This document shows, one piece after another, positions 32,773 to 63,773 of a stretch of DNA of 64,000 nt (the first letter of the stretch is position 1; every line of letters begins with the position of its first letter). The DNA is from Glycera tridactyla (Eukaryota). The notes under the pieces were generated by a model that had not been told where the DNA came from, did no database searches, and saw only the letters and a list, made by a program, of their open reading frames with translations. Made by a program: the position numbers and the translations under genes. Location: assembly GCA_965644265.1 (NCBI GenBank), contig OZ286461.1, positions 95,046,001 to 95,110,000 on the forward strand, written 5' to 3'.

Positions 32773-32913
32773 TCAACTCAGCAGCGTGCGAATCTCTTTA
32801 TGAATGTAGCATAAATATTCCACGTAGGAGGCCGAGCCGTTGGAGCTGTGATCTTCCATCAGGTACTGCTGGAAGACCGGTTCAAGTTTGTCTCGTTGGC
32901 GTACAATGATCAG
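32773..32913 (-). CDS. SEC24C: Sec24 canonical last coding exon ([11 protein letters not shown]...[18 protein letters not shown])
   Basis: ttctgtttgtag acceptor, conserved C-terminus, TGA stop. Confidence 0.96.
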   Translation of the reverse strand: MIIVRQRDKLEPVFQQYLMEDHSSNGSASYVEYLCYIHKEIRTLLS

Positions 32914-35900
32914 CTACAAACAGAAAGATTTCCATACATTACAATTGTGAGACAAACAACCACTTGAAATGTCAATCAACAATAAATATCTGCAGCGAGC
33001 CACATCATGTTTGAGCATGAGAAAGGTTTGAGGTAACTGTTATCAACATAGAAAAGATTCATAACAAATTCTCCTGACATTTTCACACATTCGAATTCAT
33101 GGCGAAGTGGTGAGCCATGGAGAAATAAAAAAAACACAACTGACTAGGAAGGCTGCGAATTTGGAATGAGGTGAACTTGCCTGAAAGACTACAACTATAT
33201 AATAACTTCAAGATCATGAACATTCAGCATCGACTCATTTTGTCTCTTTCGACCCCTGGTCAGTCATCTAGCCGTCCAATTCAATATTGTGTAGTTTTGG
33301 TCTGATTTAGTTTGGTTGTGGTTTGACTGCATGTATCAACGCAGAGGGATGTGTTTACTGTGTGTTCTGTCCCCTGCAGGCATCACTCACACAAACTCTG
33401 AACACTATATTTTGGTTCTCAACTGGAAGTAGCTGACATGATTACATACACACAGTCTAACCTGCCCTAAGCATGCACAGTACTAAGTAACATTCCTTAA
33501 GTAATCATGCTGTACTCATCCTGCCAGAGTATTGTCACTCTAATTTACCGATACTAAGCATGCACCTGTTTTAAGCATGCACTTTTGTGGTTTCACTTGA
33601 CTGCATGCTTAGGACAGGTTTGACTGTACATAGAATCTGCATCAAGAGGCTGCACACTAGCCATCAAATTGAAAAATCGGTCTCACAAATACGATGTGGA
33701 TCAAAGCACCAATCTTGATGGGGAATGAACGTGAAAAAAATAGTTTTCAATTGCCCAACAAACCATAGCCAACATACTGCAGAAAGTACAAGAATCTCAT
33801 TCTCTCGAGATACACATATAGCATACTATTCAGGAGCGACCTTCCACCATTACGATAGTACCAACTCCAGGAGAGTATGCCATGCTACCGGGCTCACACT
33901 TAACTACAATTCATTCCAATCTGTTTCTGACCTATCTTTTCAGGTTTCTCTCCGCTACAGTGAAACCTGAGACATGAGACCTCCCCAACTAGATAACAGC
34001 TCAAACGAAACTGCATTCACAGGGCAGCTTTCCTATTTGACATAGTCAAATATACTTACAAGAAACCTCCTCTTTCGAGACACCCCTTATTGCAGGTTTC
34101 ATGGTATAATGAGATTTGGAAATAGATTGGGAAGATATCATTCTGAGAGTATCAAAACCAAATTATTCACTCACTCACTGCTCAGAGAAACATGTCAGCA
34201 ATAGACATAGGACTGCTGATCATGATACGGAACAACAAAAATATGAGACATTAAAAGACATGAATAATGGAATTGCATGATCAAATCACCAGTGGTAGAT
34301 GGCTGTATTCAGGGCAACTCAAAATTGTCCCTGTTCAATGTGAGCCTTTCCTAAAGAAGGTGCCAAAAAACTGTTGTCACAACTGAATTGGAATTGATGG
34401 TACATGGGAGTTATGGCTGAAGGGGCAATTGATATTCTCATTAACATCCTGCTCTGAATTTCCATGCCTTGTTCAATTCTAACCATTCATTTGTGTGGGT
34501 GTAGGTGCATGTGCAGGCCTGCCTGTCTATGAATATCTGAAAGGGAATTAGTATGAAATTGTGACTGGCTTATGTTATGTGCAAACCCAGATACCAATTC
34601 ACTTAGATACCGTCTAACTTGCCTACATAGACCACCTTCTGATGTACCAAAAAGGGGATTTTGTACACAGGTGGCCTTCGTAAAAATGTTGTTCACTTTA
34701 TAGAGGTGATCTCGCGAGCAGGTACCATGGTATACATTTATAGTAGTTATTCTGAAAGACGGGTAGTAGCTGCATACCAGACATAACAAAAATGTTTTGT
34801 GATTAAATTGTATCCAAGGTCATCTTGAAAATGAAGAGAACCAAGGAATCTCTCTGCTGTCTTACGCTGATAACAGCGGAGCAACATAATTTTGAATTGA
34901 AAAGCAATCAGTCAAATCGGCTATAGCATCATCATAAAAGTTGCGAATACAAAACCAAAGCAATTAGGATTTGCACCCATCCACCATGAAGCTGAGAGGG
35001 ACATGTCACTCCACCATAACAGGTTACTATAACGTACAGGACATGGACTAGTGCTAGGAATTGGCCCCAATTTGGGTAATCTATTATTCAGGATTTACAG
35101 TCCAAACCTCTCTATAAAAACCATCAAAGTGGCCTTTATAGGGAGTTGGTCTTTATAGAGAGGTCATTTACAGTTGAAAATACTACGTCGCTGCTCAGGG
35201 GTGGCCTTTATAGAGGTGGTCTTTTGAGGAGGTGCAACTCTGTTGATAAATTTATCTTGATTGATGTTAAGTCAAAACATGGGGCATGGGGAGTGACATA
35301 CATGACTTTCATGGAGTGAAGGCATGAGTTTATCTGTGAAGAGTCCAGGGACACTGGAGAATGTGAGATAGAAACATATATTTGAGGAAATGATGAAAAG
35401 AGCTTGTTTGTTTTGGAGTGAAAAAATTCAATGATGTTCTGTTGAAATTGAGAGGCAATAAAATCAAATCGTACAAGGAAGATCCATTAGTGGAATTGGA
35501 ACCCATGCAGTTGATCAAATTGATTTCCTTGCAAACTGCCTCAGACTAACATGGACTACATTGATTCCACAAGTGGCATGTGTAATGTGTATGCTGCTCG
35601 ACTTGAAGATAACATGCTCAAGGAGGTTATATGTGAATGAGTGACTGTGATTCAATGAGCCAGGTTGCCTATGGCAGTTAGCTCGATAGCCAAAAGCTGA
35701 AGCTTCCATCATAAAGCCAAAAACACTAATCTTTAGCATTCTACAGGCCTTCAAGCTAAACTTCCTTCCATGGGAAGAGAACCCAACCTCTCCAATACTC
35801 CAGAATATTCCACTGAATATCAAGGGCTTCCAACAGTTTAGCTTCCTAGGTACATGTAATTTGCAGATTCTCCAAGAGAATTCCATTGAATTAATGTTTT

Positions 35901-38900
35901 CAATATTGTGGTCAGTGCAAGATGTGTTTGGGGAACTCTTGGGAAAAGCATCAGATTCCAAGGCTTTTATCGTGGGAAAAACAATTTGGAATTCGAGATA
36001 TTTACCAGAACATAGATAACTTTGGTATTTCTGAACTTTCCCATAGCAGGAAACATGGTGAAAGTTTAAGGATATTACAGGTGTTTAGGGCAGGGAAAGA
36101 GTATGAAGACATCACGGGACATTATCCACATACGGCACCAGGTAGAGTATACAGACACCAGAGACCATTTCAACCCATCAGGGCAGAGTTATGCAAACAG
36201 ATTATATATCGAGGCAGAGAAGTAGACTGGCAAGAAAAATTAGCCACAACCATGGTAGTGCCAGTTGCCGAGTGAGAAATCAGACAAAAGAAAATGCTTC
36301 ACAATATGCAGAGTGCACAATTTAGATACAATTTCAAAATCATCTCCTAGAAAAATCATCAGTAAAAGAATTTTAATTGGTGATTTTTCCATGTATATTC
36401 CTTACAGCTAGCACTCGGTGAAGGAAGAGCAGCAGAGACATGGGAGGAGAAAGAAGCCGGGTACCTATAATCAAGGGATGATGACCACTTCTAACCGAGA
36501 AGCACATTTCAGCCAGGCTGCACAACTTAATCGTCCACTTTGAAATCTTACTACAATTTCCATATGACTGATCTGTGCGTACAGAAACTCAAATCTATAC
36601 AGTTTCTATGAGATGCATGTGGAAGAGATATAATTGGTCACCACATATTGGCACAGCAACTTCATGCATCTGCACATCCATAAGAAAACCATCAGCCTTT
36701 TTGGATGGAAATACTGCAAGGGATAACAAATGAGAATTCAGCAAAGCTACTAATGACCCAGGAGAATATGAAAGAGTTTCTCTTATCAGAAAAATGATCA
36801 TTCCAAAAAATAATTTGCTGAATTCGAGCATTTTCAAAGAGAGGAGTTTTTTTCTTCTAGAAAGATGGTGTTTACCAGTTTTTTCCCAGACTGGCTGAGT
36901 ATTTGGTAGTGTTCAGAAAATCCAATAAGGAAATGAAATGGAATGGGTCGCACCCACAGTGCTTCGAGATAATCATTATGTGCGGACAAAACATTTGTAA
37001 GCTTCATGAAACACTTCAGATGGAATAATTGTCTGATTCTTCTGGTCGGAAGTTACCTAATGGGAGAAAGACGCACTAGAGATTCAAGAGCCTTACAAAT
37101 GTGTATATGCTGAAGAGACAGAACAAGCACTATGCCCAACACGAGACTGAGATCAGTGGAAACTTTGAATTGCAACCCAGCTGAATCATGCAAACCTGAT
37201 GCACAAATTGACACTGAAAGCATGAGAAGTTTGCCAAGTGTCTTTATTGAGCATGATAGAAATTGTCCCTACATCAAGGCAGGTTCATTACTGACGTGAG
37301 GGCGCTCCGTCTACCAGCAGTTTTACCATCTCTCGCTCTATTGGAGTACGCCGAATCACTATATGTAACTGCAAATAAGAAAGATTACTGTGTGTGCTGT
37401 GCCTAATGAAAGTGACAGAAGCTCCCATCTGCTGCGAGCCAATCAGGCCAGGCAGGCAAGAAAATAATTCAGCACCCATTAAATAAAGTCTCTGGCTCTG
37501 GGGCTGGGAATTCTAATGGTGGAAAAAAAAAGATGGCTTTGCAAGGGATGCGATTTCAAAAAAGATTCTCACTTCATCGTCTATTTCTACAAGAAACTTT
37601 CTCATGCAGACATCTGCACCAAATGTTTCTGAGAGCTCATGGGGCAATAATATTGCTTCATAAGAATCAGTTCAATCAGATGGATGCACTTGACATGTTA
37701 GGAAGATTGCCTACACAATGAGATTCATACACCAGAGAAATCAGCGAGACAGTTTATAACTGTAGGCATGTCATGTACCAAAACTTAGCACCTCGAGAGT
37801 CACTCCGAGAAACAAATCAGCGATTCAATAAAGGAAGATTCAGCTCAAGCTTCCATGGGAATGGCTGGATCTGCTGGATGATCACATCCTGGAAAATGAT
37901 GGGAAACTTCAGGGTACTCAGAAGCTAATACAGTGAAACCTCATTTGAGAGAGGGACCTCCTTTGAGAGACTGCATTTCATCCATTCATTTTTATTTGGC
38001 ATATTCAAATATACCTCCAATGAGAGACCACCTCTCTTGAGACCGCTTGTGGTTGGCATTTGGGTCAATCTCACAAGAGAGGTTTTACTGTACTCTGAAT
38101 ATCAGATGGAAATGTATCTTTTCTTCTTTCAGCCACTTTTTTCTTAATACGTGAGACAAACATTATGATTTTCTCTCGGAAGGCATGATCAATATAGAGC
38201 GCTAAGTCGTTGCTAATGTATGTCCCAGCAGAGATTTTTCACCAATATTCATTTGCTGTGAGCAGCCACTTTTTGTACTACATAAGGGTGTCTCACCTAA
38301 GACAGGTTTGAGGGTATTCTCAATGAAAACATTTTGCTGGACATATTTCTAATTTGAGTGTTTTGGCATTCTGCAAGTATAAATTTGCAAATTCTGTATT
38401 TCCTGGCATCCTTTCCCCCACAACAAAAATTCTTTCGAGACTGAATCATCATTAAATCAACCTTTGGACATGTGCCATCCATCCTATTGTGAAGTCATCT
38501 GGTGAATGGAGACATTCAACAGCCCAGCATCACACGAAGCGAGCAACAGATGGGGAGGGAAAGAGACCTCAATACAACCATATTCATTCAACATACAAAG
38601 CAACAGCTGTACAGAGGAGCCAGTCCGAATCAACCAGGCAGAAGGTGAAACCACTGGTTAAATAGATCACGCAACAGCAGATGTCTCCTCAAGTGTCAAT
38701 GCATATATGGCAAAGCTTTAGGCAACAGCAGAAGTGAGCTAAATTTCAAAGGTTTCCAGCGAGAAAATGCAGGGTTACAGGCAGGGTTGTGAGAATGCAA
38801 AGCCTTTATTTCATCAGGTTTGAGAGAATGCATATCTACTTGTCAAAATCCAAAGAGAGGGGTTTGATCAGCTAAGACTAGAAGATACTCCTGAGATGAC

Positions 38901-41900
38901 TCAAATATTCTTTCCTCCAATGCTACCTTGTGCGGACTACTGCATGCAAACAACTGTCTATCCCATTTGAAAACAGCAGGAAGGACCAAGTGGAAAATAT
39001 TTGGACCCTGATTCCCTGAATTTCTAATCATTCAGCACTCTTCATCCCCTGATTTTAGGTACAGTGGAGCTTTTATCAAGCAACCACTGTCCCAGGAAGT
39101 CACTTTCTAACATCCTCCATTCAAATGCCAAGACCGCTGAACCTCAGAATTCTGAGTCTTCCAGAACCTTCACACCCACAGGTATCATGTAGCATGATGA
39201 AGAAACAACATATGGACTCAGAAGGGTCAACAGCACAAAGCTGAATGGATGAACAGCACACAAGCTGATGATAGTACCCTGTCACACACAAATCACAATG
39301 ATACCATGAAAGACCGGAATTCTGGGCAAACCTAAATCAGATGTAAGAAACGAGATATAAAGAATCAAAGGATCTGAGAGAATGTGCTGCAGGGGATTCA
39401 CAAACTCTATGATTCTTTGATGATTCCTCTGATCAGAGACTGAAGGAGCGCCAGAATAACATGCGCTATCTGGCAGATTCCAATATTTTATCATTAAAAT
39501 AGTGGAAATTCCAGAGCAACCAAATAAACACACCAGGGTGCATAATGAATGTAGCCCTTCATTATGTACAGTCGAACCTGCTCGAGACCATCTTTCTATA
39601 AATGCCACCTGCCTACGAAAGCAACCCTGAACTGTGACCGTGCGTGTTTTAACAGTGAATGGTCTCTCTATAAAGGCCACCTGCCTACAAAGGCCACTTT
39701 TGGATGAGACCTCTTTAGACAGGTTCAATTGTATCTTGCAGTTCTGTTTGAAATTATGTACTACCAAATCAATCCAAGTGATAATCATGCGCCATGGTTT
39801 GATGCAGCTATATGCCCTGGTTGCAACGCGTGCACTATCAAGTATGGGCAACATCCATACACTAAGGGCTATTCCATTTAAAAAGAGGTGGGGGGGCCGG
39901 TCAGGAAAAAATTTTCACCCTCCCCCACCCCCGCTTTTTGATTATTCTGACCCTCCCCCACCCCCGCTTTCTAATTTTTCACCCCGCTTTCGGAAAGCGG
40001 TGACCCCCCTCACCCCCCCCCCCCCCCCCCGCTTTCGACGTTAACACACGAGAAGCAAGGTGAGAAGTGACAAATACGTCCAATTTCTTGACAATTGACA
40101 TTATTCTAATGGTCAATCGCGATTTCCAAGAATTACTGGGAATCTGTTGCCATTTTATCCCAAGAATGCATGATCAACGAAAAAAATCGCGCCAGAATCG
40201 AACTTTCATTCAAGATGGCGGCCGAATCCGACAGCGCCCGTGATACAAATCAGACGTGCCCACCGGCATATCAGATGATTGCCGGTTTCGTTCATCGATA
40301 TTCATCATATTTTCTGATGAATGACATTTTTCTGTCAATTAATCGCCATTTACGAGAGAAACCGGCATTTTAGGGACATTTTATCGTATTAATCGTGTAT
40401 CTATCGAAAAAGTTCACGCAGTTTGTTTACGTTGAGGCCGGTAACCAAGATGGCGGCGTCCATGATGTACGCGAGCCAGGTCGAACAGTCGACAATTTAT
40501 TGACTGATCACTGCTAATAGTCGCCCGATTCAATGTCTTAGGTCGGTTTTCAACACGAAAATTCTGACTCTCGCTCCTCCCCCACTTTTCGATTTTCCGA
40601 TCATCATACACCCCCCGCTTTTCGATTTTTCCCTAATATCGCCCCCCCCCCCCACCCGCGCTTTCGATTTCTTAGAGACCCCCCACCCCCGCTTTTTCAT
40701 TTCGTATCCAGACCGGCCCCCCCGTACGTTAATAAATGGAATAGCCCTAAGCAACATTCCATATCAATCTAGGACTGGGAAGGGAGAAGTGGAAGAAATT
40801 CTAATCCCAATATCTGAATCATCAGGTGACCCCCATGTCCCTAATTTTAGGATTTTCCAGGGAACTGCCTTATCCTCGAATCTTGAATTCAGACATTTTC
40901 CATGCCACAAATCCTGGATACTCCTCCCGACTCTAACTAGTTTTTCATACTGTAAATGGGACCCCATATCCACAAATACAATATTTTGCAGCCCCCCCCC
41001 CCCCCCCCAGCCCAAATTACCGTCAAGATTGTCTCTAAGATTAGATGCAGTGACTATGTATCTCATAAGGATGACATGTGCAATGGACAGTGGATACTAA
41101 CAAAGAGCGACCTTCCACATAAAGCTAGTTTAGGTCAACAGGATGACCTGACGATGGTGGTTTCAGAGTACCTGGCAATAAAAGTGAAGATCTCTCCTCC
41201 GCACACATGGCCTAGCAGTGAAGAGTTCTGAAGATTGCTGCCAATGTTGCGATACATCAACATGAAGTACCAAAGTGATTATCCTGCTCATGGTGAGAGA
41301 TCTTTGTTTTTATCATATAGTTGGGCCTGATGAAAGTCTTCAAAGATATCAGTCTTAGACTCCCATGAGATAATGCACCTACTGTATACAACATTCATGA
41401 CTTGATGAATGATTTGAGACAAAGTTGAAGCTACAGGGTTTTTTCGAATCATTAGAATACTAACTTCACCTCCTTTTATTAGTGTGCAAGTGTAAACACC
41501 ACCAAAGTGCAAATGGTTAGGCTGTCAAATCTAATAAGCCGCTATCAGAGGCCAATGGAAAGCCTACATAGCAAGATCTTACCTTCATATGCCGATGTCG
41601 TTCTTCACGAATATTCTTGATAATATCTCGCACACGTCTTGAAGTTGGGTTGTCCATCTCTTGTATTGTTGACTATAAGCAAATAGGTAGAAATCATTCA
41701 ATGAGAGAACGGCACCGTGATATCATCTGCCTGCATACTTCTCATACAAACCTGGAAAGACTGCAATAACCACGGACTGCTGCCAGCTGAGTGATATTTG
41801 ATCAGTCTAATTTTCCCCATCACATGTCATTCAAGCATGTTGTTTGGAATTTTCGCCCGCTCTCAACTTGAGATTACCTGCCCTAATAATCAATCAGTAT

Positions 41901-50900: not shown

Positions 50901-53900
50901 TCGTCGAAAGGGGACACATCTGTGTGTGTGTGTGTGCCCCAACAACCCACCCTTCCCCCACACACCAACCCCAACACCCCCAACCCTGGCCCATACCCAA
51001 CCCATTCCCAGCCCCTACCGAGCTGCATCCAGGAATTCATCAAGTGGGGCCAATTTTGGGCCAATTGGCCCCATTTATAGAAAAAATGGCACCAATCCTG
51101 AAAAATTGGGGCCAACGGAAAGACTGAATTTATAATGACGCAAAAATCATCACAGAACACATTTCTCCCGCCAAAAAGATGTCTAGGCTAATATTTGGTG
51201 ATCCTTCTCCAACCCGTCAATAGTTCCGAAATATCGCCGCTCACAACACGGGGTGGCGCTGTGAAAATTTGTTTCATTCGATGAATGTTTGCCATCTCAC
51301 GGATATTCAGCGAACTGTGCACTTTGAAGCCGTTTGAAACACGCACGCTGATTGGCTGAGATTGACCGGTTACGCTTCTACGAGCCAATCAGAATTGAGA
51401 AGACAAATCGCCGTCATCATTGCACCTTGAGCTTATGCTGCCGCAAGACTTATCGCCAGATTTTATCAGATTAAACATGACGAAATACAGGTTTGTGGCA
51501 CGCTTCGCTCTTTTGAATCGCGTAGATATTTCGATAAAAGCGTAGCAGTTGGCACACTATAGTCTTCGGATCACGCCAATATTTGTTTTCTCGCGTAAAT
51601 CCCGCCAAGGCGCGGCCTGGATGCAGCTCTGCCCTACCTTCCCAACCCCACCCCACCCTTCAACCACCCCCACCCCACCCATCTCCACCACCCCCCTCCC
51701 CACTCCCGGCCCTTACCCCACCCATCCTGGCCCCTCCCCACCACCGGAATCAAACCCCCACCAATCCCTCAATCTTCCCCTACGCTCCCCCCCCCCATGT
51801 GATCATGTGTACCAAGTTTTATGAAAATCCAGTTATGGATGGCAAAGTTATGGGCCGGACACCAATTGACCAATCAGAGGCCAACATCTGGCAGGAAATC
51901 ACTCAAGCGTGACAGTTCTTGCTCATGACATACCGTCTTTATTTGGTGATCATTTGTACCAAGTTTTATCAAAATCCACTTATGGATGGCAAAGTTATGG
52001 GCCGGACAAAAATTGACCAATCAGAGGCCACCATTCAGCAGGAAATCACTCAAACGTGATGGTTCTTGCTCATGACACATCGTCTTCATATGGTGATCAT
52101 GTGTACCAAGTTTTATGAAAATCCAGCTATGCGTCTTCATATGATGATCATGTGTACCAAGTCATATGAGAATCCAGTCATGGATGGCAAAGTTATGGGC
52201 CGAACACAAATTGACCAATCAGAAGCCACCATTTGGAGGGAAATCACTCAAGCGTGACGGTTCTTGATCATGACACATTGTCTTCATATGATCATGTGTA
52301 CCAAGTTTTGTGAAAATCCACTCATGGATGGCAAAGTTATGGGCCGGACACGAAAATGAGCGGACTCACACACACACTGACATCCTGACACACACACACA
52401 TGCACGGACAGGGTAAACACTATATGCCATCCGCCATGATATGGCGGACGCATAAAAACAGTTGGGCCGTCCATGGCGTATGTGCTTAGGACAGGACTTC
52501 ACCTAGCACAGGTTTTCACTCGAGCAGGTTTTACTGTATGAGAAAGTGAAATGAGGTCCATCTACCACTACTGTGCTTGAGGGAGCAAATAATCTGACAT
52601 GCATACTAGTGTATGTATGAGAAAGTGAACTTAGGTCCAGGTAGCAATCGGTGTATGGAACTGATCAGACTATTATGTAACACAGCCAAGAACAAAAGAG
52701 TCACCAGGAGAGCCTTCCCCAACAGTGAAAGGACAGCCAAGTGAATGTGTCTATTTCGGAGGGGTCTTACACAATCCAGACAGAGTTAATGAGTTCTGCT
52801 GTCTCAAAAAAATCCTAACTCACAAATGAAAAAGTCTTCTTTTACCTCAAAATCACCCAATTATATGGGATTGAATGTGGAAAATAATGCTACAGAGTTG
52901 TTGTCCAATTACTAATGCAAATGTATACCAAATTTCAAGATTGTAGGTGCGATATTAACCGAGTTAGGCCTCAGTGAAAAACTTGTACGCAAAACTTTAA
53001 CCAAAAAGTTTACGTTCTACGAAGTGATAGCCGGACAGACGGACAGACGGACAGTCGCAACCAAACAGACAGACCATCCGCATCATTACATAGACTCGCA
53101 TTTTGCTTCGCATGCGAGCCAAAAAGCAGGGGTGGGGGGGGGTCACTGAAAAATCGAAAGCGGGGGTGGGGGGTCTCTGAAAAATCGAAAGCGGGGGCCA
53201 TATTAGGGGAAAATTGGAAAGCAGGGCGATATTAGGGAATAATCGATAGGGGGTTGTGTGATGATCGGAGAATCAAAAAGCGGGGGAAAGGGCGACAATC
53301 AGTATTTTCGTGTTGAAATCCGACCTAAAACATGAAATCCGGCAACGATCAGTCAATATATTCCCGCCTGTTCGACCTGGCTCGTGTATGTTATGGACGC
53401 CGCCATCTTGGTTGCTGTTGTTACCAACTGTCAACATAGACAAACTGCATCAATTTTTTCGATAGGTACGCGAATAATGCGAGAAAATGTCTCGTAAATG
53501 GCAATTAAGTGACAGAAAAATACCAATCATAAGAAAATACGACGAATATCGATGAGCAGAAGTGGAAATTGTTTGGTATGCTGGTGGTCACGTCTGATGT
53601 GTATCACGGACGTTATCGGATTCAGCCCGCCATCTACAGGCGAAAGCCGGAGTTGTAGCCGCTTAACACGAGATGGCGGGTCAAATTATTTGGATCTGGC
53701 CCATCTACCGGCAAAACTCAGAGTTGTAGATACCAAACACGAGATGGCGTGACAAATTATTCGAGAAGCACGTGGTCGGCACGCACGCCGCCATCTTGGA
53801 TGCCAGTTCAATTCTGCCGCAAATTTTTTCATTAATCATGGATTCTTGGAGTAAAATACTGACATATTCCTGGTAATTCTTGGAAATTGCGATTGATTAT

Positions 53901-56900
53901 CAGAATAATATCAATCATCAAGAAATTCGACGTATTTGTCATCTGTCAGCCACGTTTATGGAAGCGGGGGGGGGGGGGCTTTCAAAACCGGGGGTGAGAA
54001 AATTAAAAAGCGGGGTTGGGGGAGGGTCAGAATAATCAAAAAGCGGGGGTGGGGGAGGTTCAAGAATTTTCCTGACCGCCCCCCCCCCACCCCTTCTTAA
54101 ATGGAATAGCCCTTATATTATTCATAGCATCGTGTGATGGAAATGTTTGATGAACATAAGAATGCTTAACATAAGTATACATGCATCTCAGAAATGAAGG
54201 GCTGATGAATGTGCAGACTGACAATGCAGAACAAGTTATAAGAGGAAGGCCACAAATAATGACACTTTTTGTCTTTCCATAAATTTAACTACAGTAGTAA
54301 AATTTGAGAAATCTGTTATATGTGTGTCATATTATCTCTTTTCTCAGCAGATGCGCTCACCGCAGGGCTGACCCTGAATGTGCTAACCAATTCTTATCTG
54401 ATTTCTAACCATTTAGTACCAACATGCACCACCAACTAAATGACAGTTATCCACTTGCTATAAAAGCAATGGAGGACCACAAGAAACAGGTGGTCACTTA
54501 CCTCGTCGGGCGCAAGGGTGGCAAATGGTGCAATATTGAGGATGAATGGTATGTGGGCCTGCTTCATCATATCGCTCGTGATGGGCACATTATACATGGT
54601 TGAACGGATGAATCGAGGACTGCATATACCTACAAGATGACAAGGGATTCTCGGTTGGCACCATCCATGTTCAGTGAGACAGCAATTGGATACAACCTCC
54701 ATCACTTACTTTGAGAAGTCACATCATCTCCAGTCAAATCATTTATAAATTTCCGGCAGGGCTCTAAGCTAAGGTCTGCTCTACTGGCACGACCAGGCAG
54801 ATTGGTAGATGGGACAGGAAATTTTACTAGACTGCCTGCCTAATGGACAGGTAGTTTTGAGTCAAGTATTGAGGCAGGTCAAAATGATGGGAAGGGCAGT
54901 TGAAGAAAGAATTCGAGGTATAGTCCTTTTTTGGCATAACACAAATCTTTCAACACTAGTGTTGGGAACAAGAATAAGCCAGAAGCAATATCAGTTGGTG
55001 CACACCACCACCTGAAGTATATGTAATGAAATTTCCCATCTATCTATGACATGAGTGACACTTGTTAGGGACAGAGCAGGAATCGCCTATTCATCTTTTT
55101 CCCTCAAACTACGATGAAATAACTCACCTTGGTCTTCTACTACAAAATCTGTAGTAACCAGTGGTGGTACCATTCCACGCTGACCAGTCTGATACGGACC
55201 TGAACGATTCTGTTTATCATCCTCTATCACTTGAATCTGAAATAAGACATGCATGAATGAAAGTCATAGCCTGGTGATTCACAACACAGTGGATGTATGA
55301 TCAAACTTGTTCTAAATAGGAGTATGTAGCAAATGATGAGACCCAAGTCAATTACTAACAGCAGCGTCTTCTACACAATAACTCAAATATAGTAACCATG
55401 ACCTTGTTGCAAGAACACCGTCATGGAAAAGTGACACAAGAGGATATGAGGTGTAAACCTCTGACCAGCAACTACTCTTATTGCCACAAATCAAGGGATA
55501 TTTGTCAGTAGTTCAATCAAAACAGTGGAATTTACTTGATCCATCAAAAGATACAACATTTAGGCCATCAACAATATCCAAAGAGAGCATTCTGAACAGC
55601 TTGACAGCTTTTTCATAAGACAGTTCACCCCTTCTGCAATTACAACAAAAGTATTTGTTCAAAGGGAGGAGAACTCACTAACAAAATGAATATGACACTG
55701 AAACCATTCAATTCATCATTAAAACAAACAAATGACTCACAGGATTTGGCATTTGATCAGGATCAAGGCGTCGGGGTGCTTGTGCTGCTGCTTGTCTGGG
55801 TTGTCCTGCGTAGCCAGCAGGCCCGGGTGGCGGTGGGTAGGGCGGACCTCCCGTTCCAGGACTAGGTGGTGGCTGTTGCTGGTTATACTGGTTTCCGGGC
55901 TGCATTGCACCCGGTCCTAGTTGCGGTGGGCCCACACCACCCGCCATATTTTGTTGAGGTGGCCCTACAGAGTTCATATGTGTTGTGCCCATGGGAGGTG
56001 GACCCGCCATGGAGTGCGGCGGCCCAGACATATAGTTCATCATGGGAGGACCTGCCATCGAACTGGGAGGCATAGGAGCCCCGCTCATGGGTGTTGGACC
56101 ACCAAGGGTATTCATAGTAGGTGGCGGACCAGCCATTGCATTTGGCTGCCCACCAATGGCTGGTGGTGGGGCACCTACGGAGTTAGGAAAACTGCCCATT
56201 GACGTTGGTGGCCCACCCATTGAACTTGGCGGCCCAGCCATCGAACCAGGTGGCCCACCAAATGGGGGACCCATTGATGGAGGCCCTATTGATGTTGGTG
56301 GGCCCATTGATGTTGGCGGGGGCCCCATTGATGTTGGCGGAGGTCCCATTGCAGATGGAGGCCCCATGGATGTTGGAGGTGCCATAGAGGTGGGAGGTCC
56401 CATAGAAGATGGAGGCCCCATCATTGGAGCATTCATCATGGGTGGTCTTGGTCCCCCCATGTATCCTGTGCCTTGACTCGTCGGTGGTGGCATCCCAGCC
56501 ATGCTCTGAAAACATACAGCGATGACAAATGTTAGTTTGAGGAATGTGATGCTTGTGCTTTTTTTGCTCATCCCGAAATCTATAGCAGTAACAGTCTTTG
56601 AAAAAGACATTATATCAGAATCACACAGCAATTTCATTCGATAAGATAATTTGATGGACAATCATTCATAAAGAGTTCCCTTGAAAAGATGTGTGCCCTC
56701 CAACCACAGCCACTCTGAAACTGATGTGACACTATTAGAGAATATACATGTATTCACAGCTATCACCTGCCTTGTAATTTTGATGAAAGAATCCTATTTT
56801 TCATTGGCACACTGGTCTAATGGGTCTTTTGCAAACACAACAAACTGTCCAGGGGGATCCTCATACTTATGGTGGTACTTACACTTGGTTGTGGGGGTCC

Positions 56901-61689: not shown

Positions 61690-62080
61690 AAAATGAATCT
61701 GTTTTTCAGACATTTACAAGCCCTGTGGGCAGCCCAAATCCAGAGTAAACATGCCAGTGCACACCTAAACACTTCTAGAAAACTTTCATGTGGATTAAGG
61801 CAGCAGTTCTGGAGAAGAGTTCTGCAAAATCTTGATGGAAGGGTATGCCATCCTGAAGTTTTTCAGACATTTCAATTGACCCGTGGGCAGCCCAAATCCA
61901 TATAATAAAAGTGCCAATGCACACCTACACATCAAGACGATTCTAGGAAACTTGATTTTGTGTGAGTGCAGCGGTTCCAGAGATACAGGTTCCGCAAAGT
62001 TGGTGTGCACGGAAGGATGGACGATGGACAGGCACAGACTATTTCATAGTCACCCGTTTGGTGTACCGGCGAGGGACAAT
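61690..62080. mobile_element. HINE-like fragment
   Basis: Internal repeat ccc(t)gtgggcagcccaaatcc occurs twice; GACG/GGAC tract and a terminal hairpin-like segment. Confidence 0.4.
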
Positions 62081-62152
62081 AGAAGTGAAACAGAATTGAT
62101 AGCGTCTTTTGACTACAAATATTGCAGAATTAAGATGGAATGTGCCAAAAAA

Positions 62153-63773
62153 TAAGATGGAAAATTCCAAGCCATGGTATAGTCTAAGACATAAATCAGT
62201 GGCGTATACAGGGGGTGACACGAGAGGCCTGTGCCGCCCTTTCAGCCTGACCACAACCTTTCTTTTGTTTTTCATCCACCCCTTCTTTCCACTCCAGCCT
62301 GTTTGGTGCCCCCCCCCCCTTGGGAAAGTTCTGAATACTGTACATCTCAAGTAATTCAGATTGCTCCTATGTCATGTCTGTTTTTCTTGTCATCCACAGA
62401 AAAGAAAATGAAAAACTGCCACAGACAGTATATCCCAAACTAAAGGTGCTTTTTCACAGAGGGCAATAACACCTTTAAAAATTATTCAGATGTGAAGCTC
62501 TGATAATATGCACCGCATCACTTGATTATAATCATTTTGTGAAAGTTTGGTGAAAATTGCATGTGATATGAATGAGGAGTTGCTCAACCAAGAGAGTGAT
62601 GCACAGACAGACACCGACCATTTCTAAATCCCCTACGCCTTTTGGCAGGAGATAATAATGAGCAAGATGCTGGACAACAGAGTTTGGACAGGAGGAATAT
62701 GCTCTAAACTGTGCATAGCAGCCAAGCCTTGATAGTACAGCTCAGGGCTCTACGCTAATGGTTGCCCTACTAGCACAGGCAAGCAGATTTGTTGTTAGGG
62801 CAGGTAATTTTATCAATCTGCCTGCCCGATGGGCAGGTACTCAATCATTATTTGGGCTATGATTATATGTAGGAGGGCAGGTGAAAATGACCAGGAGGGC
62901 AGGTAAAAATCCTACTTCACCTGATCAAAAGACAGCTGAAGAGAAATGTCAATGTAGAGCCCTAAGATGGAAAATTCCAAGCCATGGTATAGTCTAAGAC
63001 ATAAATCAGTGGCGTATACAGGGGGTGACACGAGAGGCCTGTGCCGCCCTTTCAGCCTGACCACAACCTTTCTTTTGTTTTTCATCCACCCCTTCTTTCC
63101 ACTCCAGCCTGTTTGGTGCCCCCCCCCCCCTTGGGAAAGTTCTGAATACTGTACATCTCAAGTAATTCAGATTGCTCCTATGTCATGTCTGTTTTTCTTG
63201 TCATCCACAGAAAAGAAAATGAAAAACTGCCACAGACAGTATATCCCAAACTAAAGGTGCTTTTTCACAGAGGGCAATAACACCTTTAAAAATTATTCAG
63301 ATGTGAAGCTCTGATAATATGCACCGCATCACTTGATTATAATCATTTTGTGAAAGTTTGGTGAAAATTGCATGTGATATGAATGAGGAGTTGCTCAACC
63401 AAGAGAGTGATGCACAGACAGACACCGACCATTTCTAAATCCCCTACGCCTTTTGGCAGGAGATAATAATGAGCAAGATGCTGGACAACAGAGTTTGGAC
63501 AGGAGGAATATGCTCTAAACTGTGCATAGCAGCCAAGCCTTGATAGTACAGCTCAGGGCTCTACGCTAATGGTTGCCCTACTAGCACAGGCAAGCAGATT
63601 TGTTGTTAGGGCAGGTAATTTTATCAATCTGCCTGCCCGATGGGCAGGTACTCAATCATTATTTGGGCTATGATTATATGTAGGAGGGCAGGTGAAAATG
63701 ACCAGGAGGGCAGGTAAAAATCCTACTTCACCTGATCAAAAGACAGCTGAAGAGAAATGTCAATGTAGAGCCC
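62153..63773. repeat. Near-perfect 810/811-bp tandem duplication
   Basis: 62153-62962 and 62963-63773 look identical by eye except for one extra C in a poly-C run. Confidence 0.95.

Follow-up and report, generated by a model that had tools for sequence, protein, structure and literature searches.

Sec24 is the subunit of the COPII coat that chooses what leaves the endoplasmic reticulum (ER), and animals are known to diversify it with paralogues and with splice forms that differ at the N-terminus. We know of no description of coat diversification through the C-terminus of Sec24. The two mechanisms that will concern us here, exon duplication and intronic polyadenylation, are themselves known, and a Sec24 product without its terminal helix would be a new specific form, present in none of the 77 isoforms of other animals that we consider below. 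In this report, we examine a 64-kb window of the Glycera tridactyla genome (assembly GCA_965644265.1, contig OZ286461.1, positions 95,046,001 to 95,110,000), by which we mean the whole stretch of DNA that was analysed. All coordinates refer to this window, which is free of N stretches, and we particularly focus on a short segment in the last intron of a Sec24C/D gene, gene and segment both lying on the minus strand. An earlier note on this DNA had proposed the segment as an alternative last exon that would give Sec24 a different C-terminus.

Our overall assessment of the sequence is that the segment is a plausible alternative terminal exon, standing at about even odds with chance. To the more specific reading, that it is a real and lineage-restricted alternative terminal exon derived from the Sec24C/D last exon, we would give nearly an even chance. 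According to this reading, the donor at 41583 would be spliced to an acceptor at 37368, in competition with splicing to the canonical exon at 32913, and cleavage and polyadenylation would take place ~20 nucleotides (nt) past the AATAAA at 37248-37243. The 26 codons so included would stem from an old tandem duplication of the last exon's first half, strongly altered since, and the protein would stop short of the invariant C-terminal helix SYV(D/E)(F/Y)LCxIHKEIR. The splicing of the site, its origin by duplication, and the production and activity of a truncated protein are all things that we infer. What the letters themselves show is the signals, the phase, the position, and an anchored similarity that is rare in this window; the case for the reading depends on that one weak similarity together with the position of the segment.

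A candidate terminal exon in the last intron of Sec24C/D

The features on which the reading depends are the following.

41583..41672, minus strand: penultimate coding exon, 30 codons, ending RHRHMK in phase 0 at the donor AAG/gtaaga (from the sequence and from tblastn to proteins P0001, P0262 and P0192)
32914..41582, minus strand: last intron, 8,669 nt, GTAAGA...TTGTAG (measured length and ends)
37369..37393, minus strand: candidate 3' splice site acacagtaatctttcttatttgcag, with a pyrimidine tract and a possible branch point in gtaat
37291..37368, minus strand: candidate alternative terminal coding segment, 26 codons, phase 0, behind tctttcttatttgcag
37285..37290, minus strand: tandem stops TAA (37290-37288) and TGA (37287-37285), read from the sequence
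37243..37248, minus strand: AATAAA polyadenylation (poly(A)) signal, 36 nt past the TGA, then CA dinucleotides and the GT/T-rich tgctttcagtgtcaatttgtg at ~37200-37220
32776..32913, minus strand: canonical last coding exon of 46 codons, followed by a stop at 32775-32773, with an E value of 4.7e-12 to human SEC24C (3EH2)

After the donor at 41583, the canonical exon would continue the protein with CTGATCATTGTA and the candidate exon with TTACATATAGTG. Most of this had been correctly described before, namely the acceptor, the phase, the 26 codons, the double stop, the position of the AATAAA and the ~8.7 kb of the intron. The spacing has to be amended, since the AATAAA had been placed 40 nt downstream. 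As to position, the candidate has what would be expected of a tandem duplicate: it adjoins the exon from which it would derive, and shares its strand and intron phase.

Resemblance to the canonical last exon

The argument for a duplicate comes from a gap-free alignment of the candidate to the canonical exon, anchored at the first codon of both. The earlier note had pointed to a shared L-x-I-V start, E11 and L18, and this alignment holds, with 7 identities over the 26 residues (L1, I3, V4, R7, E11, L18 and one more). Its BLOSUM62 score is 16 over 26 amino acids (aa) and 17 over 21, and among the 238 AG sites of the last intron that open an in-phase frame of at least 15 codons, the next-best anchored score is 2. 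A null set was also built from all 7,379 AG sites of the window on both strands, which provide 2,316 open frames of 21-99 codons. Only three of these frames score at least 17: the canonical exon itself (105), the candidate (17), and one random site (17) which has a poor acceptor and no poly(A) signal.

A profile built on the canonical last exons of many animals, 114 distinct ones in all, places the candidate 4.4 standard deviations above the window background. In this test, 11 of 44,572 stop-free positions score as high as the candidate or higher, the real exon and the candidate included (p ~2e-4 per position). The matches of the candidate fall on the best-conserved core of the profile, at L1, I3, V4, R7, E11, F/M14, L18 and V19. 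The hydrophobic pattern is kept as well, both in the final beta-strand (LHIVIR versus LIIVRQ) and in the short helix (11 residues in each). Identity by codon position is 10/21, 11/21 and 2/21 for the first, second and third positions respectively, a pattern that would be expected of an old coding copy and that is not independent of the amino-acid match.

How rare such a site should be can be estimated by multiplying the ~170 in-phase frames of the intron by 4e-4, by 0.038 and by 0.07, for similarity, acceptor and poly(A) signal. This gives ~0.07 chance sites in the intron on similarity alone and ~2e-4 when similarity, acceptor and poly(A) signal are all counted.

Several observations weigh against descent from the canonical exon. 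Nucleotide identity is 33% over the 78 aligned nt, and blastn and MAFFT comparisons of the exon and its flanks with the canonical exon and its flanks give nothing convincing at the DNA level. The family-invariant E20-D21 reads D-G in the candidate, which is also devoid of the most conserved part of the last exon. It is shorter than a full copy, with 26 codons versus 46, and past codon 21 there is a weak colinear DNA match (p ~0.08). A tblastn search with the canonical exon, considering matches with E <5, does not list the candidate, and phmmer of the candidate peptide against all PDB chains returns the LuxR-type helix-turn-helix of bacterial NarL (E 0.6), not Sec24. This NarL match is at chance level, and yet it is better than the match of the candidate peptide to Sec24. 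Furthermore, a score of 16 or more against the canonical exon is also reached by 12 other random stop-free 26-mers of the window, one of which scores 32. Finally, the site was picked by eye from a scan of ~250,000 windows, so that a figure of 2e-4 per intron is not decisive alone; as the scan is very large, events of this rarity arise by chance somewhere.

These observations are those that one would expect if the resemblance was fortuitous. An intronic AG behind a pyrimidine-rich stretch would then open a short frame with a coincidental hydrophobic pattern and would be spliced never or negligibly. This explanation is quite possible, although we stop short of calling it probable. It is favored by a similarity that stays at noise level for all the unanchored methods, by the random 26-mers that do as well or better, and by the way the site was selected from so large a scan. 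It has more difficulty with the joint occurrence, at one place, of strand, phase, acceptor, similarity and poly(A) signal, which the estimate above makes so rare within one intron, and with the matches sitting on the most conserved profile positions instead of being scattered.

Two further likenesses between the candidate and the canonical exon were considered and set aside. The acceptor tracts resemble each other (AATCTTTCT...TTTG.AG; rank 4 of 7,435 sites), which could have been taken as a sign of duplication, but other real acceptors of the gene are equally alike, and the likeness therefore reflects a local splice-site consensus and not a duplication. The AATAAA could also have been derived from the canonical CAT AAA GAG codons (CATAAAGAG), which was rejected because the colinear match is not significant (p ~0.08). 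That match runs between 37240-37262 (GCTCAATAAAGACACT) and 32791-32812 (ATTCATAAAGAGATT, codons I-H-K-E), and it would let the AATAAA descend from the coding sequence of a once full-length copy.

Splice and polyadenylation signals

On a crude scale of acceptor strength, the candidate acceptor scores 14, which is the median of the 17 real acceptors of the host gene (range 10-18), and of the AG sites in the window, only 3.8% reach a score of at least 14. An AATAAA or ATTAAA lies no more than 100 nt from the stop in 7% of the AG-opened open reading frames (ORFs) of the window, and the minus strand of the last intron contains five AATAAA and one ATTAAA. In this intron, nine sites have a good acceptor that opens a frame with a poly(A) hexamer close by; such combinations are common, which is a further point in favor of a chance origin.

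Taken as signals only, what the sequence of an intronic-polyadenylation exon should contain is found here: a 3' splice site, an in-frame stop, a hexamer and a downstream GU-rich element. This opens a second alternative, in which the exon is real and used at a low level, without being a duplicate and without any function as a protein. Its resemblance to the canonical exon would then be coincidental, and the product would be a truncated and probably unstable Sec24C/D, either as noise of splicing or polyadenylation or as a means of reducing how much full-length mRNA is made. We find this alternative distinctly improbable. The completeness of the splice and poly(A) signals speaks for it, and since a helix invariant in animals would be lost, a folded, working product is less likely, as this alternative supposes. 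It leaves unexplained, however, an anchored similarity that is rare by chance.

The anchoring of the alignment is itself not unique, which is a point against the duplicate. Indeed, no stop interrupts the frame over the 48 codons before 37368, and a stronger acceptor, also in frame, precedes it:

37513..37532, minus strand: second acceptor-like site cttttttttt ccaccattag/, acceptor score 17, exon start at 37512

A terminal exon of 74 codons starting at 37512 is equally allowed by the sequence. There is also a donor-like GTAAAA at 37326, after exactly 14 candidate codons. The exon structure could thus be a different one: a 42-nt cassette (37368-37327) with the donor-like ATG/GTAAAA, spliced in frame to the canonical last exon, or a terminal exon from 37512, or an exon of an unrelated nested transcript. 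The placing of the GTAAAA after a whole number of codons is what suggests the first of these structures, and the stronger acceptor with its 74-codon open frame the second. We regard this whole group as very improbable. For the cassette, the similarity to the canonical exon extends beyond the putative donor, to codon 21, and the donor is weak; for the longer exon, the 48 codons upstream of the candidate acceptor match no Pfam family and nothing in the protein collections. The candidate frame has no Pfam match either, and an exact look-up of the 63-aa ORF came back empty.

Relatives and annotated isoforms

The relatives that can be compared are distant, with 55-68% protein identity. The exon boundary after ...MK is kept in them, but their last introns are much shorter than the one here: ~590 nt in Lamellibrachia, ~50 in Capitella, ~180 in Helobdella, ~290 in Lingula and 2.3 kb in Octopus. 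Conservation in related species had been named in the earlier note as a check on the proposal, and here the outcome is negative. The last introns of these five animals contain no counterpart, neither a frame that resembles the alternative peptide nor one that resembles the last exon of the animal itself. Among the 61 frames of the 2.3-kb Octopus intron, the highest anchored score is -1, which is the picture of a null intron.

We also compared 77 annotated or assembled isoforms, in ten clusters that cover three Branchiostoma, Octopus, scallops, two oyster, Lingula, Acanthaster and Lineus. The canonical helix ends 66 of them, and the remaining 11 either break off at other introns or are fragments, so that a homologous alternative last exon is found in 0 of the 77. 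This is in line with the earlier statement that no such Sec24 isoform was known. A full-text literature search gave, in the titles and abstracts of the 15 best-ranked papers, no homologous Sec24 C-terminal isoform. Both the silence of the readable relatives and the lack of a precedent among the isoforms count against the duplicate and are what a chance resemblance would lead one to expect.

Some Sec24C models do end early with unrelated tails, namely P0403 (Lingula, MetaClust), P0354, P0357 and P0363 (Branchiostoma), and P0402 (Lingula X3). P0403 diverges directly after the same ...RHRNMK boundary, and the ends of the forms from amphioxus and Lingula X3 lie at other introns. These models are truncating terminal exons or retained introns, and not homologous last exons.

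Since amphioxus and Lingula isoforms show such early ends, truncating terminal exons do occur in the Sec24C family, and this adds to the case for a non-duplicate intronic-polyadenylation exon.

If the candidate exon is nevertheless real, it belongs to the lineage of this animal alone, and because it is strongly diverged it would be either old and lost elsewhere, or fast-evolving. A younger, lineage-restricted copy may also be compatible with its absence in the relatives, given how distant they are at 55-68% identity.

Sequencing runs and repeats over the intron

Sequencing runs were searched with a 4.6-kb query that is mostly intron, and a run is listed only if at least 1/20 of the sampled words are present in it, so that RNA runs holding just the 150-nt exon could not appear. 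The search gave four small runs from one study, with DNA-like low coverage of a relative that is ~95-96% identical on unique pieces. They contain a depth of thousands-fold on repeats, scattered single pieces of the intron, and nothing on the penultimate exon. The depth of the contigs of this relative is 0-0.9 over the bin 37228-37391, and the sole contig that reaches the bin ends at 37279, outside the coding segment. With no high-copy depth near the candidate, there is therefore nothing repeat-like at 37291-37368.

The contig in question (37073-37279) includes the poly(A) signal and carries 8 differences, of which the five listed are all at 37115-37163. These listed differences lie beyond the putative cleavage site, which is at most a hint toward conservation. 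We also considered the candidate as a repeat, a retrocopy or a known domain, and rejected this on the lack of a second copy in the window and of any Pfam match.

Two other searches were uninformative about the junction, as they missed their own controls. A 56-aa junction peptide had no match in the protein collection, its shared penultimate exon included, and a degenerate DNA pattern for both junctions had no match in metagenome contigs, the canonical junction included.

Elsewhere in the last intron, high-copy repeats are found at ~37884-38211 and 39524-41163, where the summed contig depth of the relative goes from hundreds to ~20,000. They include a family of 33-nt C-rich motifs and a 45-nt inverted repeat pair (39862-39906 and 40707-40751), 800 nt apart. 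This pair looks like a foldback element or one resembling a miniature inverted-repeat transposable element (MITE). Translated pieces of the element (…AIPFKK.WGG…PPPP…) recur at ~53,900-54,200 and 62,000-63,200.

The host gene

The gene that hosts the candidate is of the Sec24C/D type. One of its exons matches human SEC24C with an E value of 1.4e-33 and SEC24D with 1.2e-32, and the same exon gives 3.6e-08 against SEC24B and 3.8e-06 against SEC24A. On these sequence matches, the host gene is a regular Sec24C/D orthologue, and not a Sec24A/B. By tblastn, 17 colinear exon matches span residues ~390-1150 of P0262 and P0001, two proteins that carry PF04810, PF04811, PF08033, PF04815 and PF00626, and the zinc-finger, trunk, beta-sandwich, helical and gelsolin-like regions are all present in these colinear exons. 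In the gelsolin-like domain, the final beta-strand, the short helix and the terminal helix, which is invariant, all come from the canonical last exon. The human peptide to which the earlier note had aligned the candidate is indeed the C-terminus of SEC24C, at residues 721-766 of chain A in PDB 3EH2. By tblastn, no other duplicated exon of this gene is found in the window.

The closest proteins in the collections are 63-68% identical to the host gene and comprise P0302, the annelids Lamellibrachia, Capitella and Owenia, and several molluscs. A protein above 68% identity was not found by a representative search, by a word search with P0001, or by a profile of P0262 and eight window exons. The Sec24C of Owenia fusiformis (P0192; gene range 28,901 nt) is ~65% identical to the window exons and is therefore not this gene. 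The 11-residue C-terminal motif of the host gene is shared with the annelid sequences, in keeping with an annelid gene.

The closest protein, P0302 (68%), comes from an intron-less gene of 3.3 kb (L001:443-3745, GCA_029979845.1) on a 12.5-kb contig, and the identical gene is also found in an ENA metagenome scaffold and in a Logan SRA contig (L002 and L003). This locus could be a transcript-derived contig, or could come from an organism with few introns.

The predicted product and its significance

For the last 300 residues of P0302, the closest homologue, an AlphaFold model has a mean pLDDT (predicted local distance difference test) of 80, with a strand at 254-259, a helix at 265-269, a loop, and the terminal helix at 284-299. 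Across 36 diverse animals, the Y, V, H, E and I of this terminal helix do not vary. Judging from the model, the alternative exon would swap the strand and the short helix for similar residues (LHIVIR and a 10-residue helix) and would omit the terminal helix. The truncated product might fold poorly, or might form a coat subunit with altered contacts.

That the animal makes a second Sec24C/D, with a private diverged strand and helix and without the invariant terminal helix, possibly altering the behavior of COPII, is a claim that goes further than the existence of the exon, and we consider it unlikely. If it were true, the second Sec24C/D could select other cargo, bind Sec23 or the membrane differently, or act as a brake on ER export. 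Such a C-terminal variant would also provide a new handle on the roles of the gelsolin-like domain and of its helix in coat assembly or cargo choice. Should the exon be unused, the locus would still serve as a calibration case: with full splice and poly(A) signals and an anchored identity of ~27%, it lies about at the limit of what can be discriminated from chance by sequence only.

Comparison with known systems

Three known systems come close to what is proposed for this locus. The first is tandem exon duplication, as in mutually exclusive exons, with which the candidate shares an adjacent copy in the intron, the same strand and phase, a gap-free alignment from codon 1 and the conservation of hydrophobic positions. 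The known pairs of tandem duplicates are usually of equal length and clearly similar, whereas the candidate covers 21-26 of the 46 codons, is 27% identical and has no similarity at the DNA level. The candidate would also terminate the transcript, through a stop and a poly(A) signal of its own, unlike tandem-duplicate exons, which are swapped inside the message.

The second system is intronic polyadenylation through a 'skipped terminal exon'. As in that case, an acceptor within the intron, a short frame, a stop, an AATAAA and a GT-rich stretch would lead to a replaced and shortened C-terminus. The exons of intronic polyadenylation normally encode unrelated tails, however, and the tail of the candidate resembles the exon that it would replace.

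The third is the known diversity of Sec24 itself, with the paralogues SEC24A/B and SEC24C/D and splice variants that are N-terminal or internal. Changes in Sec24 are the usual route by which the COPII coat diversifies its cargo selectivity, and an additional form of Sec24 would fit the same logic. The 77 isoforms vary in their N-terminal region or by truncation at other introns, whereas the candidate would vary the C-terminus.

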